From: Lepidodermella squamata
Lineage: Eukaryota; Animalia; Gastrotricha
Direction of reading: 5' to 3'
Assembly (NCBI GenBank): GCA_047495785.1
Contig: JBLDXI010000038.1
Coordinates: 372,001-436,000, forward strand
DNA: 64,000 nt
The notes beneath the pieces were generated by a model, which was not told where the DNA came from, searched no databases, and saw nothing but the letters and a program-made list of their open reading frames with translations. The position numbers were made by a program, and so were the translations under genes. Every line of letters begins with the position of its first letter. The stretch's first letter is position 1. Below, piece after piece: positions 16,236-26,490 of this stretch.

Positions 16236-16908
16236 ATGAATGGTGGCATGATAAATCAAATTGTTGTCACCGGTTGGCTTCTCTCGATACCGGTCACGGC
16301 TACCTTAATCCACACCGCGGCAAAGAGCGACGCAACTGATTTGATGCAGAAACTAACCGCTGCTATTGTAGACCGCTCTATGGGCAGAAATGCAAGCATG
16401 GACGAAGCGAAACAGCATCAACAGCAACAGCTAACTTGCCTGCAAGGTACACTTGTTCGTAACAAAAAATTATGATCTTTTATTTTTCTTTAGAAATGAC
16501 AATAGCCATTCTTATTTGTCGACTGGACACGAGAGGCCGTCGCGACGTTTCATGGGCTAATTCTGAATCAACAAATTTAACCCCCAGTCCATCGCCAAGA
16601 ACCTTAGTTCGAATAACACGTGATCATCTTAGCGACTTTCGAAGAGACTGTTGTAGAAACACTGCTAATGGGCGACCCAAGGTAAGACCATATTTTATTT
16701 CAATTTTTTTTAAATTTAGGCAACGGTGTAATTTTATATCCAACGCTAATTTGAATTTAACGCTAGCCTATTATAATTCTGTGGAATTTTTTCCACACCA
16801 TATCAGGAAATAATTCGTACTCATGTTGTTCTTTAGGTGCAATGCCGGCCGACAAAACTGTGCCCGGAGAGGATTTTCAATGTCGGATCCATGTTACCTG
16901 CTGCATAG
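16236..16908 (+). CDS. Divergent insulin/relaxin-like prepropeptide 1
   Basis: Exons 16236-16446, 16494-16681, 16837-16908. Hydrophobic N-terminus; B-like LTCLQEMTIAILICRLDT-RGRR; C-peptide ending RITR; A-like DHLSDFRRDCCRNTANGRPKVQCRPTKLCP. Confidence 0.75.
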
Positions 16909-17502
16909 TTGTTGTTCTGTCGCTTACATTTTATACATCAGATAATCAAATATTTGATCCATGAGTCGTCACTGCTAATTGTGTGCCATCCTGTTTGCCG
17001 GCTTGTTTACCATTCCGGTGAGATCGTGTCTGAAAAAGTTTGGCTAATCATCTCCGCCCATCTTGCTTTCAACTTTTGTTGCGCATTTACGTTGCTTGGT
17101 TTTATATTTCATATCGAAGAAGAAAAATAAAAACGAAAGCTTGTTGATGATGGTTTCGTTTTATTAGGCCATGTCCAAGGTTTTCAAAAGAGTCTGACGT
17201 TGTAGGACATATCTTCAAATAAGTGCATAGTAGCATCAATATTATACATTTATTCACAAACAGCAAAGTACAAAATTAATCAATTTCTCAAATCATTACC
17301 AAGTCATAATTTAGACAGCCGAAAGAGTATGACGTTTAAGATCATGTGTGATGGAAAATAGTTTTCTAATTTTTTAATCGTCATTTTTTGTCATTTTCCC
17401 AAATTTCCACAGTAACATTCGGCGCTCATTTCGGACAAGAGTATTAACATAAAACAGACAACAAATTCAAAGAGAGGCAGACATAAAATGTTCGAGTTGT
17501 TT

Positions 17503-18321
17503 CTATACAAAGTCTTTAATGCTTCTTTTTCACAACTTTCGACCTATTTGCTTGCGAAATCCCCGGAACATTGCGACACATCCTGCTCGGCCTGCAGGCC
17601 AGCTTCGGCAGGGCAGCTATGCCATCAGAACAACAGTGCCTGATGAAATGCACTCGACTGTCTCGCTTTTCGACTCTGGCGCCGATTATTTCAAAAGATT
17701 CGCCATCCTCTTCGAAAAACAGTATAAAATTACGCTATTGAAAAATTAAAGATAGGTAATTTACCGGTTCCTCTTTGCTGGTCATCAATTGAGCGCTTTT
17801 TTCTTGAAGTGGATGAGCACATAGTTAACGTTAGCCATACTAAATTTGGGAAATTTCTGCATAGAGGCTGCCGCCCTATTCAAGTTTAACAGACCTAGCT
17901 CGTAGCAGTTCATTTTAGGTGAAGCAAGTTGGCCGTTCGGACTTCGCAATGGATGTGGTAGCGGTGGCGCCATCGCTGTCATGTTAACTGTCGCGATAAG
18001 GTCCCGCTCAACCCGCCGCATCAGTCGCTGACTAACAGTAGGTTGACTAACCGTAGCGGTTGTAGTCAGATCTTGCGAGTTGCTTTGCAAAAAACTTTGA
18101 AGCTCATCGAGATCCGCAAGTGAGTTCAGGCTCATCGACACCGGTTGTTCTGCTTCCATGTGGCTGATAAAAGCATTCTGGTCCTCGGTCAAGGATTGCT
18201 CCGGCCGATCGTTTGAAGAAGTTGGAGGTCTCGTTACAACAGTTATAGTAATTAAAGTTGTGACTAAGGCGGCGGCTAGGGCCATAGAGACGATTGTTTC
18301 CCATGCCACTGACTCTGGCAT
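17503..18321 (-). CDS. Divergent insulin/relaxin-like prepropeptide 2
   Basis: Exons 18321-17895, 17839-17765, 17709-17503 (two 55-nt introns). Signal-like N-terminus, long pro-region, B-like MNCYELVWLTLTMCSSTS-RKKR, C-peptide ending RVEKR, A-like DSRVHFIRHCCSDGIAALPKLACRPSRMC plus tail with KR. Confidence 0.75.
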
Positions 18322-18905
18322 TGTTGTCTTGCGGTTGATTATTATCAAATATCAAATAGGATTAACAGCAAATAAAAAGTGCCACGATGAAGTTTAAGTA
18401 AAAAAAATTAAAACTGGCGCGTGCTAGAATTGTTTGAATCGCGTTTTCTGTTCGCACGTGTGTTTATTCCGAATGTTCGAAACTGCAAAATAATGAGATC
18501 TAAGAACAAAGGAAAACTTGGACTTCGAAAGAACAGGTGTAGCAAAGAGTTACCTTATTGTGGTTGACGATCGAATTATAGGCAATCAGCATCCCGCTGT
18601 GTTTCTATTGTAGACAAACATGTTCGAGTACCAGACTTGTTGAAGACGATAGATACGACGCATTTCTAAAAATAATAATTCAGCTGTGGCATTGCGCAAT
18701 GAAAATCCACGCGCCAGATATTGAGCACAAGTTGGCGTGATATGTTTTCAAATGTGGCGCCAGAGGTTACTTCGGTTTCCTGTAAAGGTTAACATAAACA
18801 ACTGGGCATTCACTTTTGAAAACTACTTGCTCTAAACACACGTAATTACCAAGGTTATCCGAACCATTTTTGTGATTATAGTTTCGATTAAATTCCAAAT
18901 GCAAA

Positions 18906-19509
18906 ATGGTAATCAGTTATCTAGTATGGAGTTATAGCTATTTGACTGTTTCTTGTTATGAATAGGGTCTTGAATACCGGCTATCCGGAAACTTATTCGC
19001 AACTTCTTTTGTTGTTGTTTTTGTTGCCTTAATCAATCTCGATGTTGTCTCATGCCATTTCGAATCCACCGTGGCACCAACAGCAGCGCCGTCGTCGCCT
19101 TCACTCAGCTGCCTGCAGGAGATGACTATCACGCTGATGATATGCCGATTGGACACTCGAGGGCGCCGTGAAGCCACTGTACCAGCCAGCATGGACTGCA
19201 ATGGATCCTCAGCCGAATGCCCAACAACTACGACATCGCAATCAGGCCCCATTATCATGCCGGCTCTTTCACGTAGGCATTCATTATAGGATTTTTTGAA
19301 GCCAAATGAAATTCCTTATAGGTTTCATGTCATCTCCCGTCGGCTCCCTGTTCCGCGCGGGCGGTGTTCGTCAGCGACGTGATCATTTGGATGATTTTCG
19401 CCGAGATTGCTGCCGTGGGTCCATCAACGGCCGTCCCAAGTTCCCGTGCCGCCCGACCAAGCTCTGTCCGGATAAGCTGGTTGGACTGCCGAGGCATTTC
19501 AACGTCTAA
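18906..19509 (+). CDS. Divergent insulin/relaxin-like prepropeptide 3
   Basis: ATG 18906-18908 followed by intron; exons 18966-19272, 19322-19509. Signal peptide (LFATSFVVVFVALINLDVVSC), B-like LSCLQEMTITLMICRLDT-RGRR, RQRR, A-like DHLDDFRRDCCRGSINGRPKFPCRPTKLCP. Confidence 0.75.
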
Positions 19510-19899: not shown

Positions 19900-20304
19900 T
19901 TCCCGCTTGTCCAGAAAATATCACCAAAAACCCCACTTGTCAAGCACCCAATAGAAACCCAAAAAAAGTTCAAGCAACACTCAAAAAACGATTTTATTTA
20001 GAATCACGAAAAATTGGGTGAAAATTGGGCAGAATTTAGGGAGAAATTGCAGGCGACAGGTATCGAATCGGGCAGCATTCACCCCAATCGAACAGCACTT
20101 AGCCACGAGTTCCGGAAAAATCGGGCAGAACTCGCCCATAAATTCGCGAAAGTCGGGCAGAATTCGTCCAGTATGTCGCGTAGATCAAGAAACAATCGGC
20201 CAGCTTTCGATGAAATCCGAGATAGCTCGGGCAGCATTGGATCCCAGTAATCGCAACACGGCATCCCTTGCGACATTGAAAGCTAGAAGTTACAGCGAAT
20301 CGAG
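19900..20304 (+). repeat. Dispersed repeat copy A (inverted relative to copy B at 21318-21513)
   Basis: 20079-20304 is nearly identical to the reverse complement of 21318-21499 apart from a 30-nt and a 12-nt indel; cccgcttgtccaga at 19902 also matches; internal (a/g)tcgggcagaa subrepeats. Confidence 0.9.
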
Positions 20305-20660
20305 CGAGTCTCGTTGGGGCATTTTGCTGTAACGATTCGCCTGTTCAACGAGATTCGGAGGAAAATCTCTGTGCGAAGCTTCTGCATTTGCATTTTCCAT
20401 TCATCTTCGGTTCCTGCGGAACCTCGATTCATACAGTCATTCGTACAAGAAAAGTGTTTCTGTATTCTGAGCCATCCAAGATTGCTTAATTCCCACATGG
20501 TTGGTTATTTTTGCTTATCGCTAAAAGATAAAATGAGTCACCACCTTGCCGGTGCGATAAAATGTAGTTACTTTTTTACTATTCTTCCTGTTTAACTAAG
20601 CGAGAGTATTTAACAATCCACATTTCCGGTTTCTTCTTTGCGAAAAAACAACAAATAATT

Positions 20661-21077
20661 ATGGCTCCTATGTTGCCAGTTTTTACCTTCATTTTTTTGT
20701 TCATTTCTCATTCACTCGTCCAAAGCCGACCGATCGCCGAGCAGTTAGATGTTGAGCTGCAAGCGCCTGCGGCTGGCTCACCACAAAAGGCTATCAAATG
20801 GAGCTCAGATGCGAATTTTCCGGGCGACATGGAAGAGGCGGCGTTGAATTCGTTCACCAAAGCCTATGCCCAGTTCGGAATGCAAGGCAATTCGATTGCG
20901 CAGCAAATAACAACCGATCTTCAACGCATGTTCCCGAACGGTAACTGGCAGGCGTTTGTTTACGAGTTCAAAATTCCGAACGGAGCGTCTTACTCCCATC
21001 GAACACCCTACATGATTTCCATGATCATTGGCGATTACATGGCTCTGGTTTTCCGACAAGACGTGGCGAAATCCTAA
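20661..21077 (+). CDS. Secreted protein with dynein light chain (LC8)-like domain; intronless
   Basis: Signal peptide MAPMLPVFTFIFLFISHSLVQS; 'DMEEAALNSFTKAYAQF...IAQQITTDLQRMFPNGNWQAFV...SYSHRTPYMISMIIGDYMALVFR' parallels LC8 ([60 protein letters not shown]). Confidence 0.7.
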   Translation: MAPMLPVFTFIFLFISHSLVQSRPIAEQLDVELQAPAAGSPQKAIKWSSDANFPGDMEEAALNSFTKAYAQFGMQGNSIAQQITTDLQRMFPNGNWQAFVYEFKIPNGASYSHRTPYMISMIIGDYMALVFRQDVAKS

Positions 21078-21288
21078 ACCTGTGAATTTTACAATTTTAC
21101 ATCTGTTCATTCGACTTTCATTGTTGTATGTACCGGTGCCCTGATCTTCATTCTGCATTTTTTTGCTACAGATGACAAAGAGGAGGGAATAAATTATTTC
21201 AACTAAACGCCTCATCGGGTCTATTTCAACTCTCGCGAAATATTTGTTTTTTCATTGTGAAATTCCTTTTTATTTCATTTTATATGTG

Positions 21289-21626
21289 TTATCCGGGTCG
21301 TATCGTAAAATTCAATTCTCGATTCGCTGTAACTTCTAGCAAGGGATGCCGTGTTGCGATTACTGGAATCCAATGCTGCCCGAGCTTTCTCGGATTTCAT
21401 CGAAAGCTGGCCGATTGTTTCTTGATCTCCGCGACATACTGGACGAATTCTGCCCGATTTTTCCCGAACTCGTGGCTAAGTGCTGTTCGATTGGGGTGAT
21501 CTGGACAAGCGGGCATTTTTTGATATAAAAATACAAAAATATCAAAAAATCCCTGCTTTGAAGAAGGTTTTATGGGTTTATAATTCGGCCATTAAGAAGG
21601 CATATTTTACGATACGATCCGGATAA
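21289..21626. mobile_element. MITE-like element (~340 bp) containing repeat copy B
   Basis: 23-bp TIRs ttatccgg(g/a)tcgtatcgtaaaat at 21289-21311 and 21604-21626, one mismatch, TA-rich flanks. Confidence 0.7.
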
Positions 21627-22563
21627 TATATAATACCTAGGCTAGTTTCATCTCATCGAACAATCATCACCTGAAATATGATCAACCGAACAGTTTCTAG
21701 AAGAGATCGAAATAAATAAAATGGATTTCCCACCTCTACTACTTCTTTTATCAGGGAAGCATTGGTGATTTTTTGAGAAAATCCGAATATACACTCTAGC
21801 TGACAGGTGTACAGTTTGACCGGTGGCTTTGTTTATCGCCCGCAGCTGTTATATCCGGGCAGCGTTATGCAAACGCATCACCGTGGTTCGCTTAGCGCCG
21901 CGCTCGCCTCGAGAGCGGGTTTTCTTTCGCCGTGATAAGACACAGCCAGAACAGTCGCATATAGCGCAGTCTTATAGCCGCGCACAACAAGCCCAGCTCT
22001 ACGGGCGCCCGGCAACTGTCCTTCACCTCAGCGTCGCTGCAGTCAAATCGCGCCTTGTTTGTTTTGTTATCTCCTAGGCGCGCGCGACTCGGCCGCGCGG
22101 TTCCGTCTTCCGAACGTACATAAACGCGCCTTGAAGATGGCGCCGTTGTTTACGCGACTAACCCAGTGACGATGCGATGCCGTAATGGTACAACAACAAT
22201 GCCAGCAATCGCATGCCGCGGTGGAGTCGAGATTATTATTATTATTACAGCAATCAAGCAATATACCAGCTGGCCGGTTATAATATGGACCCGCTCAGCG
22301 CTTTTCTCTAGAACTTTCGCGCGCAGGCACGCGCGCCGATCTGACCGCTAAAAATATTGCAATAAAACCAAGTTGTAGCCAATAATACCTTTGGCGGCTC
22401 ATTCTTTTTTAGCTTGTTTATACAATACATCATCACTCAGTCGAATCGAAACCAGATTTATACCCGGCCGGCGAATTGCAGCTAACAACCATATTGCATT
22501 AAGTGATTTCTTATCTCCTGAAAAATTATTGTTCTCATCCTAGGCACTTTTATTCTGAACCTA

Positions 22564-23705: not shown

Positions 23706-25953
23706 GCGAACTCAAACCGAAGAAATATCATTGCTGGAATTACATTGATATAACCTTATAATATAACTTCCCTTTCTTTCTAAACGGTAATTTTAGAAAA
23801 AGGAGATGCCCATGATCTGTTGTGCTCGAGACACAAACTGCTTGGATCAGTTTTTAATATAGCCGTAAGATTGCTGCCCGTGTATCGACCTGTTGTGTGT
23901 TTTTCAACTCTCTAATTTAATTACAAAGCCATGCATTTGTCGATCTTGACAACAGAAAAAAATCTGCTCACATTTGTGGTTTGGTTCATTTTCATAGTTG
24001 AAATGTAATGAATAAAAAAGAATAACAATGAGAATAATAACCGAAGTTAATCTACCTTCTTTTGTACCTATTCAACACTGGCTTAAAAATAGAGTTGCTC
24101 TATTGTTGGATTTGCTCGTCGTAGGCGGCGGCTAAATCGTAGTACGGAGGCGGGACATTTAGAAATATATAGTGTCGCGACGTGGGCGCAGTTGTGGCGC
24201 CAGTGGCTGGCTATTGCGTCAACGCCTAAAGCCGTCTGGTGGGAAGAGACACACTTATGCGATAAGAAGCTGCAAAGAATTATTAGCTTTGGCATTATTC
24301 CGTTGACCTTGACAGCGTTTTTAAACCAATAATTACAAATTACAACTTTCTTGACCCTTTCAATTTGACCCCTTTCTCGTTTTCCTCTCTTATAATGGAC
24401 GTTAATAGCCAACTGACTGGCAGAGTCTTTAGTCTCAAGCGATGAAATCATTATGAATCAAAAAATTCCTGTACGGGATTGTTGATCCGTGACTTCAAAA
24501 TTGAGTGGGCTGCCAAAAAATGATAATGCTACGCACTATAACCACTATAACTATAGAGAAACGAGAGGTGTACCAGCATTCACTTATCTTGCTAAGGTCG
24601 CAATTTTTTACGCTGCTTGCGATTACTTCATATTATCGTGCTCGTACGAGTAGACTTCATTAGTTGTAATTATTCAACTACGGGAACCTCCCACCCTAAA
24701 TGTAAGGTCCAGCTATTAGGTCAAAGACGCCCATTTTTAGGAATATCCCCAAAGTGCGAAGTGCGAAAGTGATGTTTTTTATTGATTTCATGTTTACGAC
24801 GCCTGCGCTATGTGACCTTTGTCCTTTCGTGTTATTTATTTCCCCATCGAGAAAATTCTGCTCGGTTACTTTTTGACGTCACCTTGGACAATAACTTGTC
24901 TCGGGTAGCTCAAAAGCGTGTGCGGTCGCTTAAAGCCGCTTTTGGCTGCCGCAAGCACCTCTATTCTTTTAAGGAAGTTTGTCCATCCTAAACGTCGTGT
25001 CTATTGAATCATTCTTCTTGAGCTGTCTTGAGCCACTTGTACGGCTGAATCACCACATCTAATAATACATAAGGTTTTTCGGGTTGCAATAATAATATTG
25101 TAGGTACCTTTACGTGAAGCGAATGCTGTAGTTGCTGTTTACTCTCAGAAGTTTTTGCAAATTGCCATATCACTACACTACAGATCACGTCTCATTATTT
25201 TACGTAGCTAGATCAAAAATAGGCCGGCGTTAAGGCGGGTGAATCCATGCCAGGCATATGGCCGCGCGCCTCTCATTTTGCGAGTAGGCGTGCGTGTTAC
25301 TTGCCGTCACTAGGTATGACGACGAAAGGCCACGACTATTTACCATCGCCTCCATTCAATATTTTAGCTCGCAAAAAGCTTTGTTTGATTTATGCCTGTT
25401 CTATAAATAATTTTCTGATATTTAATCATAGCATTCGTCATGCGACATTGTTCATAGCTCATAGCCATACAATTATTGTTGTCTGATAAGTCGGCAACTT
25501 TTTTAGGGCTTGTAAAACACGCCTTTTTAATTTCCTATTTCCATTAATGCGGGCTATAGCGGTCACGCCCACAACTACCAATGAACACATGCCGCGAGGT
25601 CCGCAGTTGGACCCACGCGCATAAATCACGACTTGAGGACTACAATCGTAGATTCAAGTGTGTCCACTCCCTGCAATATCATCGTCGCCCATCGATAATC
25701 TGACCGGCATTTGTTGTTTGCGTAATAATTCTTCTACCGATACCAAGACACACGTGATTTTTTACGAGTCTCAGGTGCCTTCTGCCGTATCGGCGTGCAC
25801 CCCCGCGCCGTAGTACACGTGAAACCAGCCCTCGAGTTGTTTGCTGTCGAACTTATTTAACCGTCTAAAATAGTGCATTTTTCCATTCGTTTCAAATAGG
25901 CATCTAATTACAATTATTATAATTTAATTTCTACACAAACAACTCGGCAAAAC

Positions 25954-26490
25954 ATGAATATCAACATGATCAATCTTTTTTTCCTTCTTTCACTCGCTGC
26001 TGCGACGTATGGCGCGATCGAGAGCGATGATGCGCAATCTTCAGAGAAGCTCCTCAATCGTGAGAAGCGATCAAGTTTGATGGCTCAAATTCTTTACGAT
26101 GAGTTGCGGCTTCGACTTCGCGGCGATCAAGCAAGATCGCCTTCCAATCAACATCGGCGGGTAGCGGCAGCTTCGATGATGCGAAAGCGGCGATCGACAA
26201 CACCCCTCGTCCGCGACCTTCTTTCATCATGGGCCGATTCGGCTGACCAGAACTACGCCAGCAAGTACAACGGAGACAGTCAAGTTGTTGAGGAATTGCA
26301 AGATGAAGTAAAAGATTTGTCTCGAAAATTGTAAGTTTCTCACCAACACCTCCTCGATTCTGAGTTGATGATTTCTTTGTTATCTAGGATTAAACGAAGT
26401 CTCATGGCGATGATTTTGAAGGATACTTTGAAGCATCGGCTTGAAGAGGAGAACAAACCAGGCCGGCATCGGGACATTGTGTGGGGGTAA
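25954..26490 (+). CDS. Neuropeptide/prohormone precursor with two related peptides
   Basis: Signal peptide; KR/RKRR sites; exons 25954-26330 and 26388-26490; peptides KR-SSLMAQILYDELRLRL... and KR-SLMAMILKDTLKHRL...DIVW-G-stop (amidation glycine). Confidence 0.75.

Follow-up and report, generated by a model that had tools for sequence, protein, structure and literature searches.

The window, i.e. the whole 64,000-nucleotide stretch of Lepidodermella squamata DNA analyzed here, has about 44% GC, short introns and a gene of the motile-cilia type. At 16.2-19.5 kb it contains three genes in the order plus, minus, plus (g1, g2 and g3). Their spliced models encode precursors of 156, 231 and 165 amino acids respectively, that of g2 having a long pro-region. 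The coding spans and introns are the following:

16236-16908, plus strand: g1 coding span, exons 16236-16446, 16494-16681 and 16837-16908; 156 aa
16447-16493 (47 nt) and 16682-16836 (155 nt), plus strand: g1 introns, both joined in cDNA contigs
17516-18321, minus strand: g2 coding span, exons 18321-17895, 17839-17765 and 17709-17516; 231 aa
17840-17894, minus strand: g2 intron interrupting the B-like segment, joined in cDNA contigs
17710-17764, minus strand: g2 intron in the linker (C domain), phase 1, GT..AAG, 55 nt, cDNA joint
18500-18553, minus strand: g2 5'-UTR intron, limits approximate, joint 18499-18554 in run X2
18906-19509, plus strand: g3 coding span, exons 18906-18908 (ATG only), 18966-19272 and 19322-19509; 165 aa, cDNA joints
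19273-19321, plus strand: g3 intron in the linker (C domain), phase 1, 49 nt, cDNA joint

RNA-derived contigs of two public runs, X2 and X3, bear out each of the six predicted coding introns (47-155 nt, GT..AG): five are spliced out in X2 and X3 alike, and the joint of g1 intron 1 comes from X2 alone. Among the confirmed joints is the one that uses the weaker AAG acceptor of g2. The X2 contigs end in SMART adaptor letters and those of X3 in poly-T, and the 400 bases upstream of g1 are covered by neither run; because of these ends and this lack of coverage, the contigs behave as cDNA. g1, g2 and g3 are transcribed and spliced prepropeptide genes, and the splice models of the initial annotation are supported at each coding intron.

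The contig ends, which are approximate, place the ends of the g1 and g2 transcripts head-on about 13 nt apart (window 17131-17144), and the starts of g2 and g3 back to back within roughly 100-200 nt (window about 18700-18839). These back-to-back starts suggest a promoter shared by g2 and g3.

The three precursors have the same layout: an N-terminal hydrophobic stretch precedes C-x10-C, and a linker with a basic site at either end joins this to CC-x11-C-x5-C. The two cysteine-bearing segments, referred to as B-like and A-like, lie as follows (identities are to the orthologues of a second species, described below):

16437-16519, plus strand: g1 B-like C-x10-C, split by a phase-1 intron; 15/15 identical
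16622-16863, plus strand: g1 A-like CC-x11-C-x5-C, Asp 9 residues before CC, split by a phase-0 intron; 26/30 identical
17817-17907, minus strand: g2 B-like C-x10-C, split by a phase-1 intron; 15/15 identical
17576-17662, minus strand: g2 A-like CC-x11-C-x5-C; 25/30 identical
19110-19145, plus strand: g3 B-like C-x10-C; 14/15 identical
19381-19467, plus strand: g3 A-like CC-x11-C-x5-C; 24/30 identical

The gaps between the core cysteines are 10, 0, 11 and 5 in g1, g2 and g3, so that the shared spacing put forward in the initial annotation is the same in all three spliced proteins. The basic sites also lie where they had been placed: RGRR, RKKR and RGRR after the B-like segment of g1, g2 and g3, and RITR, RVEKR and RQRR before the A-like segment. 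CC-x11-C-x5-C did not occur once in 200 shuffles of the 3.6-kb region, which rules out a chance motif.

A profile of the A-like segments was scored against 1.84 billion proteins. It gave one match, P0001 (128 aa, E 2.7e-18), from ENA metagenome contigs, which is an intronless orthologue of g1. The P0001 contig also carries g2 on the minus strand and g3 on the plus strand, in the same gene order as the window, and in both species the trio is flanked by the same neighbours, PDZ-LIM and SPARC. The animal from which this contig derives is presumably a relative of the window species.

The gaps 10, 11 and 5 are found in the six proteins of the two species, as are six invariant cysteines (two in B, four in A including the CC doublet). 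With signal peptides predicted by hydropathy and cleavage predicted from the position of the sites, all six proteins have the insulin-superfamily order signal, B, C, A with basic sites around C. In each the first basic site begins 5 residues past the second B cysteine and the A chain opens with an Asp that lies 9 residues ahead of CC. The six proteins agree without exception at eleven A positions (D, F, R, CC, PK, CRP and the last C); the Phe occupies the position of Ile-A2, and Leu or Met directly precedes the last cysteine. The motif PK-x2-CRP(T/S)(K/R)(L/M)C described earlier holds within the window, but its K/R position is a Ser in the g2 orthologue. The A chain is cationic (+2 to +4). The residue after the first B cysteine is Leu or Tyr, and the Gly of the insulin B chain is absent. 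The g3 linker of the window has two additional cysteines, which the g3 of the second species lacks.

The core codons give a pN of 0.11 and a pS of 0.85 (range 0.67-1.0); their silent sites have reached saturation. Between the species the B-like segments are identical at 44/45 positions and the A-like segments at 75/90; the signal, pro and linker regions (linkers of 25-62 residues) have diverged and align poorly. This codon comparison indicates that strong purifying selection is acting on exactly the two cysteine-bearing segments, and strengthens the earlier claim of selection. Since this identity persists despite saturated silent sites, selection targets just the two chains that insulin-type processing would release, and the basic cleavage borders of these chains are conserved as well.

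These values bear on the possibility that the products of the trio are not hormones but a defensive, adhesive-gland or toxin-like secretion. The products are small, secreted and have a cationic A chain, and the genes form a tandem cluster that is lineage-restricted. Toxins, however, usually diversify fast, and here the mature chains are near-invariant, with one-to-one orthology and a gene order kept across saturated silent divergence. A signal bound by a receptor fits such chains and such orthology better, and we regard a gland secretion or toxin as very improbable.

The closest relative of each gene is its counterpart in the other species, and the duplications are therefore older than the species split. 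In the tree the fork of g1 and g3 is weakly supported; the B segments are diagnostic. An ancient triplet of IGF, gonadulin and dilp7 type was considered and rejected, because the derived spacing is common to all three genes and g1 is a close paralogue of g3. In the second species no intron breaks the B segment of g2, which independently confirms the g2 splice in the window. An artefact of splice guessing is ruled out by the joints in cDNA contigs and by orthologues that are uninterrupted at the core introns of the window.

Three introns of the window species lie inside the conserved B and A segments (16447-16493, 16682-16836 and 17840-17894) and have no counterpart in the second species. Their positions differ between g1 and g2. 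They correspond to a lineage-specific gain in the window species or to a loss in the second species. In addition, the second species has a Sushi/CCP-repeat gene between g1 and g2 (L001:6059-7633, plus strand), which the window lacks.

Other features lie beyond the trio. A high-copy repeat starts at about 19900 (window about 19900-21550; depth in thousands in a DNA run), and text similar to it recurs near 21260-21540. At 20661-21077 (plus strand) an intronless ORF begins like a signal peptide and continues with a domain resembling dynein light chain (PF01221, E 2.5e-5, which is below cut-off); such a start is odd for a cytoplasmic fold of this kind, and the second species has no match to the ORF in its syntenic interval. 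Upstream of SPARC a non-coding stretch of 17 nt is identical in both species (window 22056-22072, L004:14880-14896) and is a possible regulatory site. Downstream of SPARC, at 25951-26334 (plus strand), lies a secreted prohormone-like ORF. It has a signal, REKR, then a helical peptide whose first residues are SSLMAQILYDELR, and another basic site, RKRR; it has no match in Pfam. Two similar ORFs occupy the same place in the second species (L004:17370-17612 and L004:17960-18217, plus strand); in them a related segment follows RTRR and RHRR. From their sequences, the ORFs downstream of SPARC are a candidate second conserved peptide family.

The initial annotation had read the trio as insulin-like. 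For this reading the layout and the cysteine order hold, as does a phase-1 intron that interrupts the linker in g2 and g3; profile tests were negative, and no fold match reached significance. The linker intron is present in both species (confirmed by RNA in the window, predicted in the second species), while g1 lacks it in both. According to Veenstra, a phase-1 intron of this kind is characteristic of insulin genes (PMC8286064); chance can produce one too. Directly ahead of CC, five residues are similar to those of four known ILPs, our comparison set, with a permutation P of about 0.05 (one of three segments tested), and the combined anchored score against these four gives P 0.13. Aphid gonadulin has NDFRECC at the CC doublet.

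The canonical spacing, C-x11-C in B and CC-x3/4-C-x8-C in A, is found in none of the six proteins. For reference, sea anemone ILPs have C-x11-C with CC-x4-C-x8-C (PMC8698791), nematode ILPs CC-x3/4-C-x8/9-C (PMC3493385) and schistosome ILPs CCC-x2-C-x8-C (PMC5391603). The loss of the B-chain Gly, to which attention had been drawn, is confirmed in all six proteins but is not unique to them, the Aedes dilp7/relaxin orthologue being likewise devoid of it.

The membership check against the Insulin family of Pfam was negative: neither the exons nor the intronless orthologue match Pfam, the orthologue having no match at E<=10. A sequence search of PDB gave no match, and hhalign against a mosquito IGF gave a probability of 1.4% with only the CC region aligned. 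Foldseek (PDB, viral, Atlas) and VIA showed no significant link to insulin. Nothing was found in the ESM Atlas searched by features, in scans of JGI metagenomes or in a word-index protein search with g3 exon 2, and the family alignment retrieved P0001 only.

AlphaFold models of the intronless orthologue P0001 were made in two runs. In both, a B helix begins at the first cysteine and is followed by a disordered linker; a further helix runs up to CC, and a short one closes at the last cysteine. The helices thus follow one another in insulin order, but at pLDDT 61-63 and pTM 0.42-0.43, and neither model has a significant fold match. In run one mini-IGF-1 is at rank 29 (Z 2.3) with the top identity among the matches listed (20%); in run two it is outside the top 50. 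For the B segment the helical hydrophobic moment is 0.07-0.10 against 0.28-0.50 in the four ILPs, and the strand-like moment is higher. The segment is hydrophobic all round and seems to lack the amphipathic pattern of insulin B chains; its pattern is alternating and rich in Thr and Ile.

An unrelated family might have reached insulin-style two-chain processing independently, with disulfide-linked B and A chains in a fold of their own, perhaps with a beta-strand B. The alternating, Thr/Ile-rich B segment agrees with this, as do sequence, profile and fold links to insulin that all stay below significance and three cysteine gaps that are all off the canon. But the cysteines are ordered two plus four as in insulin, the CC doublet comes directly behind the second cut, Phe stands at A2, two paralogues have the phase-1 linker intron, and the predicted helices are in insulin order. 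We consider an independent origin unlikely. A saposin identity was rejected, since cysteine order and domain length do not fit; it had been considered for P-x3-C-x5-C and C-x10-C, which resemble saposins.

Each precursor could also be the source of two peptides that are released separately: C-x10-C would form a disulfide ring of 12 residues, and CC-C-C a bicyclic peptide. C-x10-C is the spacing of somatostatin-14, and CC-C-C is an alpha-conotoxin-like framework. Between g2 and g1/g3 the B and A segments vary independently (2-4/15 for B, 11-13/30 for A), as two peptides might, and the W, T and T of the g2 ring are at positions reminiscent of somatostatin. Against this, the ring is very hydrophobic and lacks a turn-forming residue, AlphaFold gives a helix at its place, and in g1 and g3 no basic site immediately precedes it. 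Somatostatin has an FWKT core, and its ring is released at the C-terminus of the precursor. Here the spacing matches, but the Lys of that core is absent, Trp is present in g2 only and the ring is internal. Two separate peptides are in our view improbable.

Membership of the insulin superfamily is not proven; the trio probably works like insulin-type prohormones. We favour the reading that g1, g2 and g3 are paralogues of a single, strongly remodelled hormone gene of the insulin superfamily, whose product has two chains, and hold it to be probable though by no means assured. For such a hormone, the predicted signal peptide would direct the precursor into the ER, where three disulfides would form, two between the chains and one within the A chain, the latter closing a loop of 11 residues versus 3 in insulin. 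A convertase of furin/PC type would cut before and after the linker, at R-x-(K/R)-R sites (R-x-x-R in g1 of the window). The g2 pro-region has a conserved R-x-E-R-D-L site (RVERDL / RRERDL), at which an additional convertase cut may occur. The two-chain hormone, its A chain cationic, would then be trimmed and secreted. The B cysteines, at i and i+11 (three helical turns), would lie on one face of a continuous helix; such a helix would explain both the shorter B gap and the lost turn Gly.

In vertebrate insulin the site-1 residues are GlyA1, IleA2, ValA3, TyrA19, GlyB8, LeuB11, ValB12 and PheB24 (PMC12796670). Most of them are missing here, and the B chain stops before the equivalent of B24. 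Relaxin-type ligands bind LGRs through the B helix. Since the site-1 residues are mostly absent and the B segment is invariant, a relaxin-type LGR is weakly favoured by analogy as the receptor, with a likelihood we would put a little under even. Another type of receptor is a less likely candidate, and the insulin receptor, bound as agonist or antagonist, is somewhat less likely again.

Compared with insulin and the neuroendocrine ILPs of invertebrates (PF00049), the trio shares the signal-B-C-A order, the basic sites, the two plus four cysteines with CC, the variable C-peptide, the phase-1 C-domain intron (g2 and g3) and hydrophobic residues at A2 and before the last cysteine. It differs by a B gap of 10 (11 in insulin), A gaps of 11 and 5 (3-4 and 8 in insulin), the absence of Gly B8 and of an aromatic strand at B23-B26 (the B chain extends 4 residues beyond Cys), an A chain that starts 4 residues earlier and the lack of a profile match. 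Arthropod gonadulin / dilp8 (Veenstra 2020, PMC7357564) likewise has six cysteines in insulin order and is hard to recognise, and aphid gonadulin has a non-canonical B gap (12) besides its NDFRECC. However, the gonadulin checked keeps CC-x3-C-x8-C, and gonadulins vary greatly between species whereas the chains of the trio are near-invariant. Dilp7 / arthropod relaxin and the asterozoan multinsulins (PMC7357564, PMC8286064) resemble the trio by conserved chains, convertase sites and an N-terminal extension before the B cysteine, but have a B gap of 11 and CC-x4-C-x8-C in A; the phase-2 intron and F-domain of dilp7 were not seen in the trio. The ILPs of nematodes and schistosomes (PMC3493385, PMC5391603) are a precedent for a rebuilt cysteine pattern, with 6, 8 or 10 cysteines and CCC-x2-C-x8-C, but in the motifs given in those papers the last gap is 8-9 and the B gap 11 (or PPG+11), none being near 11/5.

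The spacing C-x10-C / CC-x11-C-x5-C was found in no paper of the literature searched, which is mostly non-subscription, nor among the described insulin relatives in it, in agreement with the suggestion that it was undescribed. The motif words are absent from the supplements of a mollusc/lophotrochozoan neuropeptide survey, and the literature on gastrotrichs mentioning insulin or neuropeptides, again mostly non-subscription, gave no treatment of gastrotrich ILPs. All three cysteine gaps are changed and fixed across species, which goes beyond the variants found so far. The trio looks like an undescribed hormone family. That it represents a small two-chain disulfide fold new to science with its own receptor, whether as the most strongly altered insulin core known or as insulin-style B/C/A processing invented independently, is a bolder and rather doubtful proposition.

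Lineage-specific ILP variants are familiar (gonadulins, multinsulins, nematode types), which tempers the surprise. Nevertheless CC-x3/4-C-x8-C is near-fixed from sea anemones to vertebrates, and searches for insulin relatives depend on it. A conserved and expressed CC-x11-C-x5-C family means either that the insulin core can be rebuilt this far or that the precursor design arose twice. Surveys based on motifs and Pfam miss such hormones in poorly sampled phyla, and the trio provides first candidate endocrine signals for gastrotrichs.
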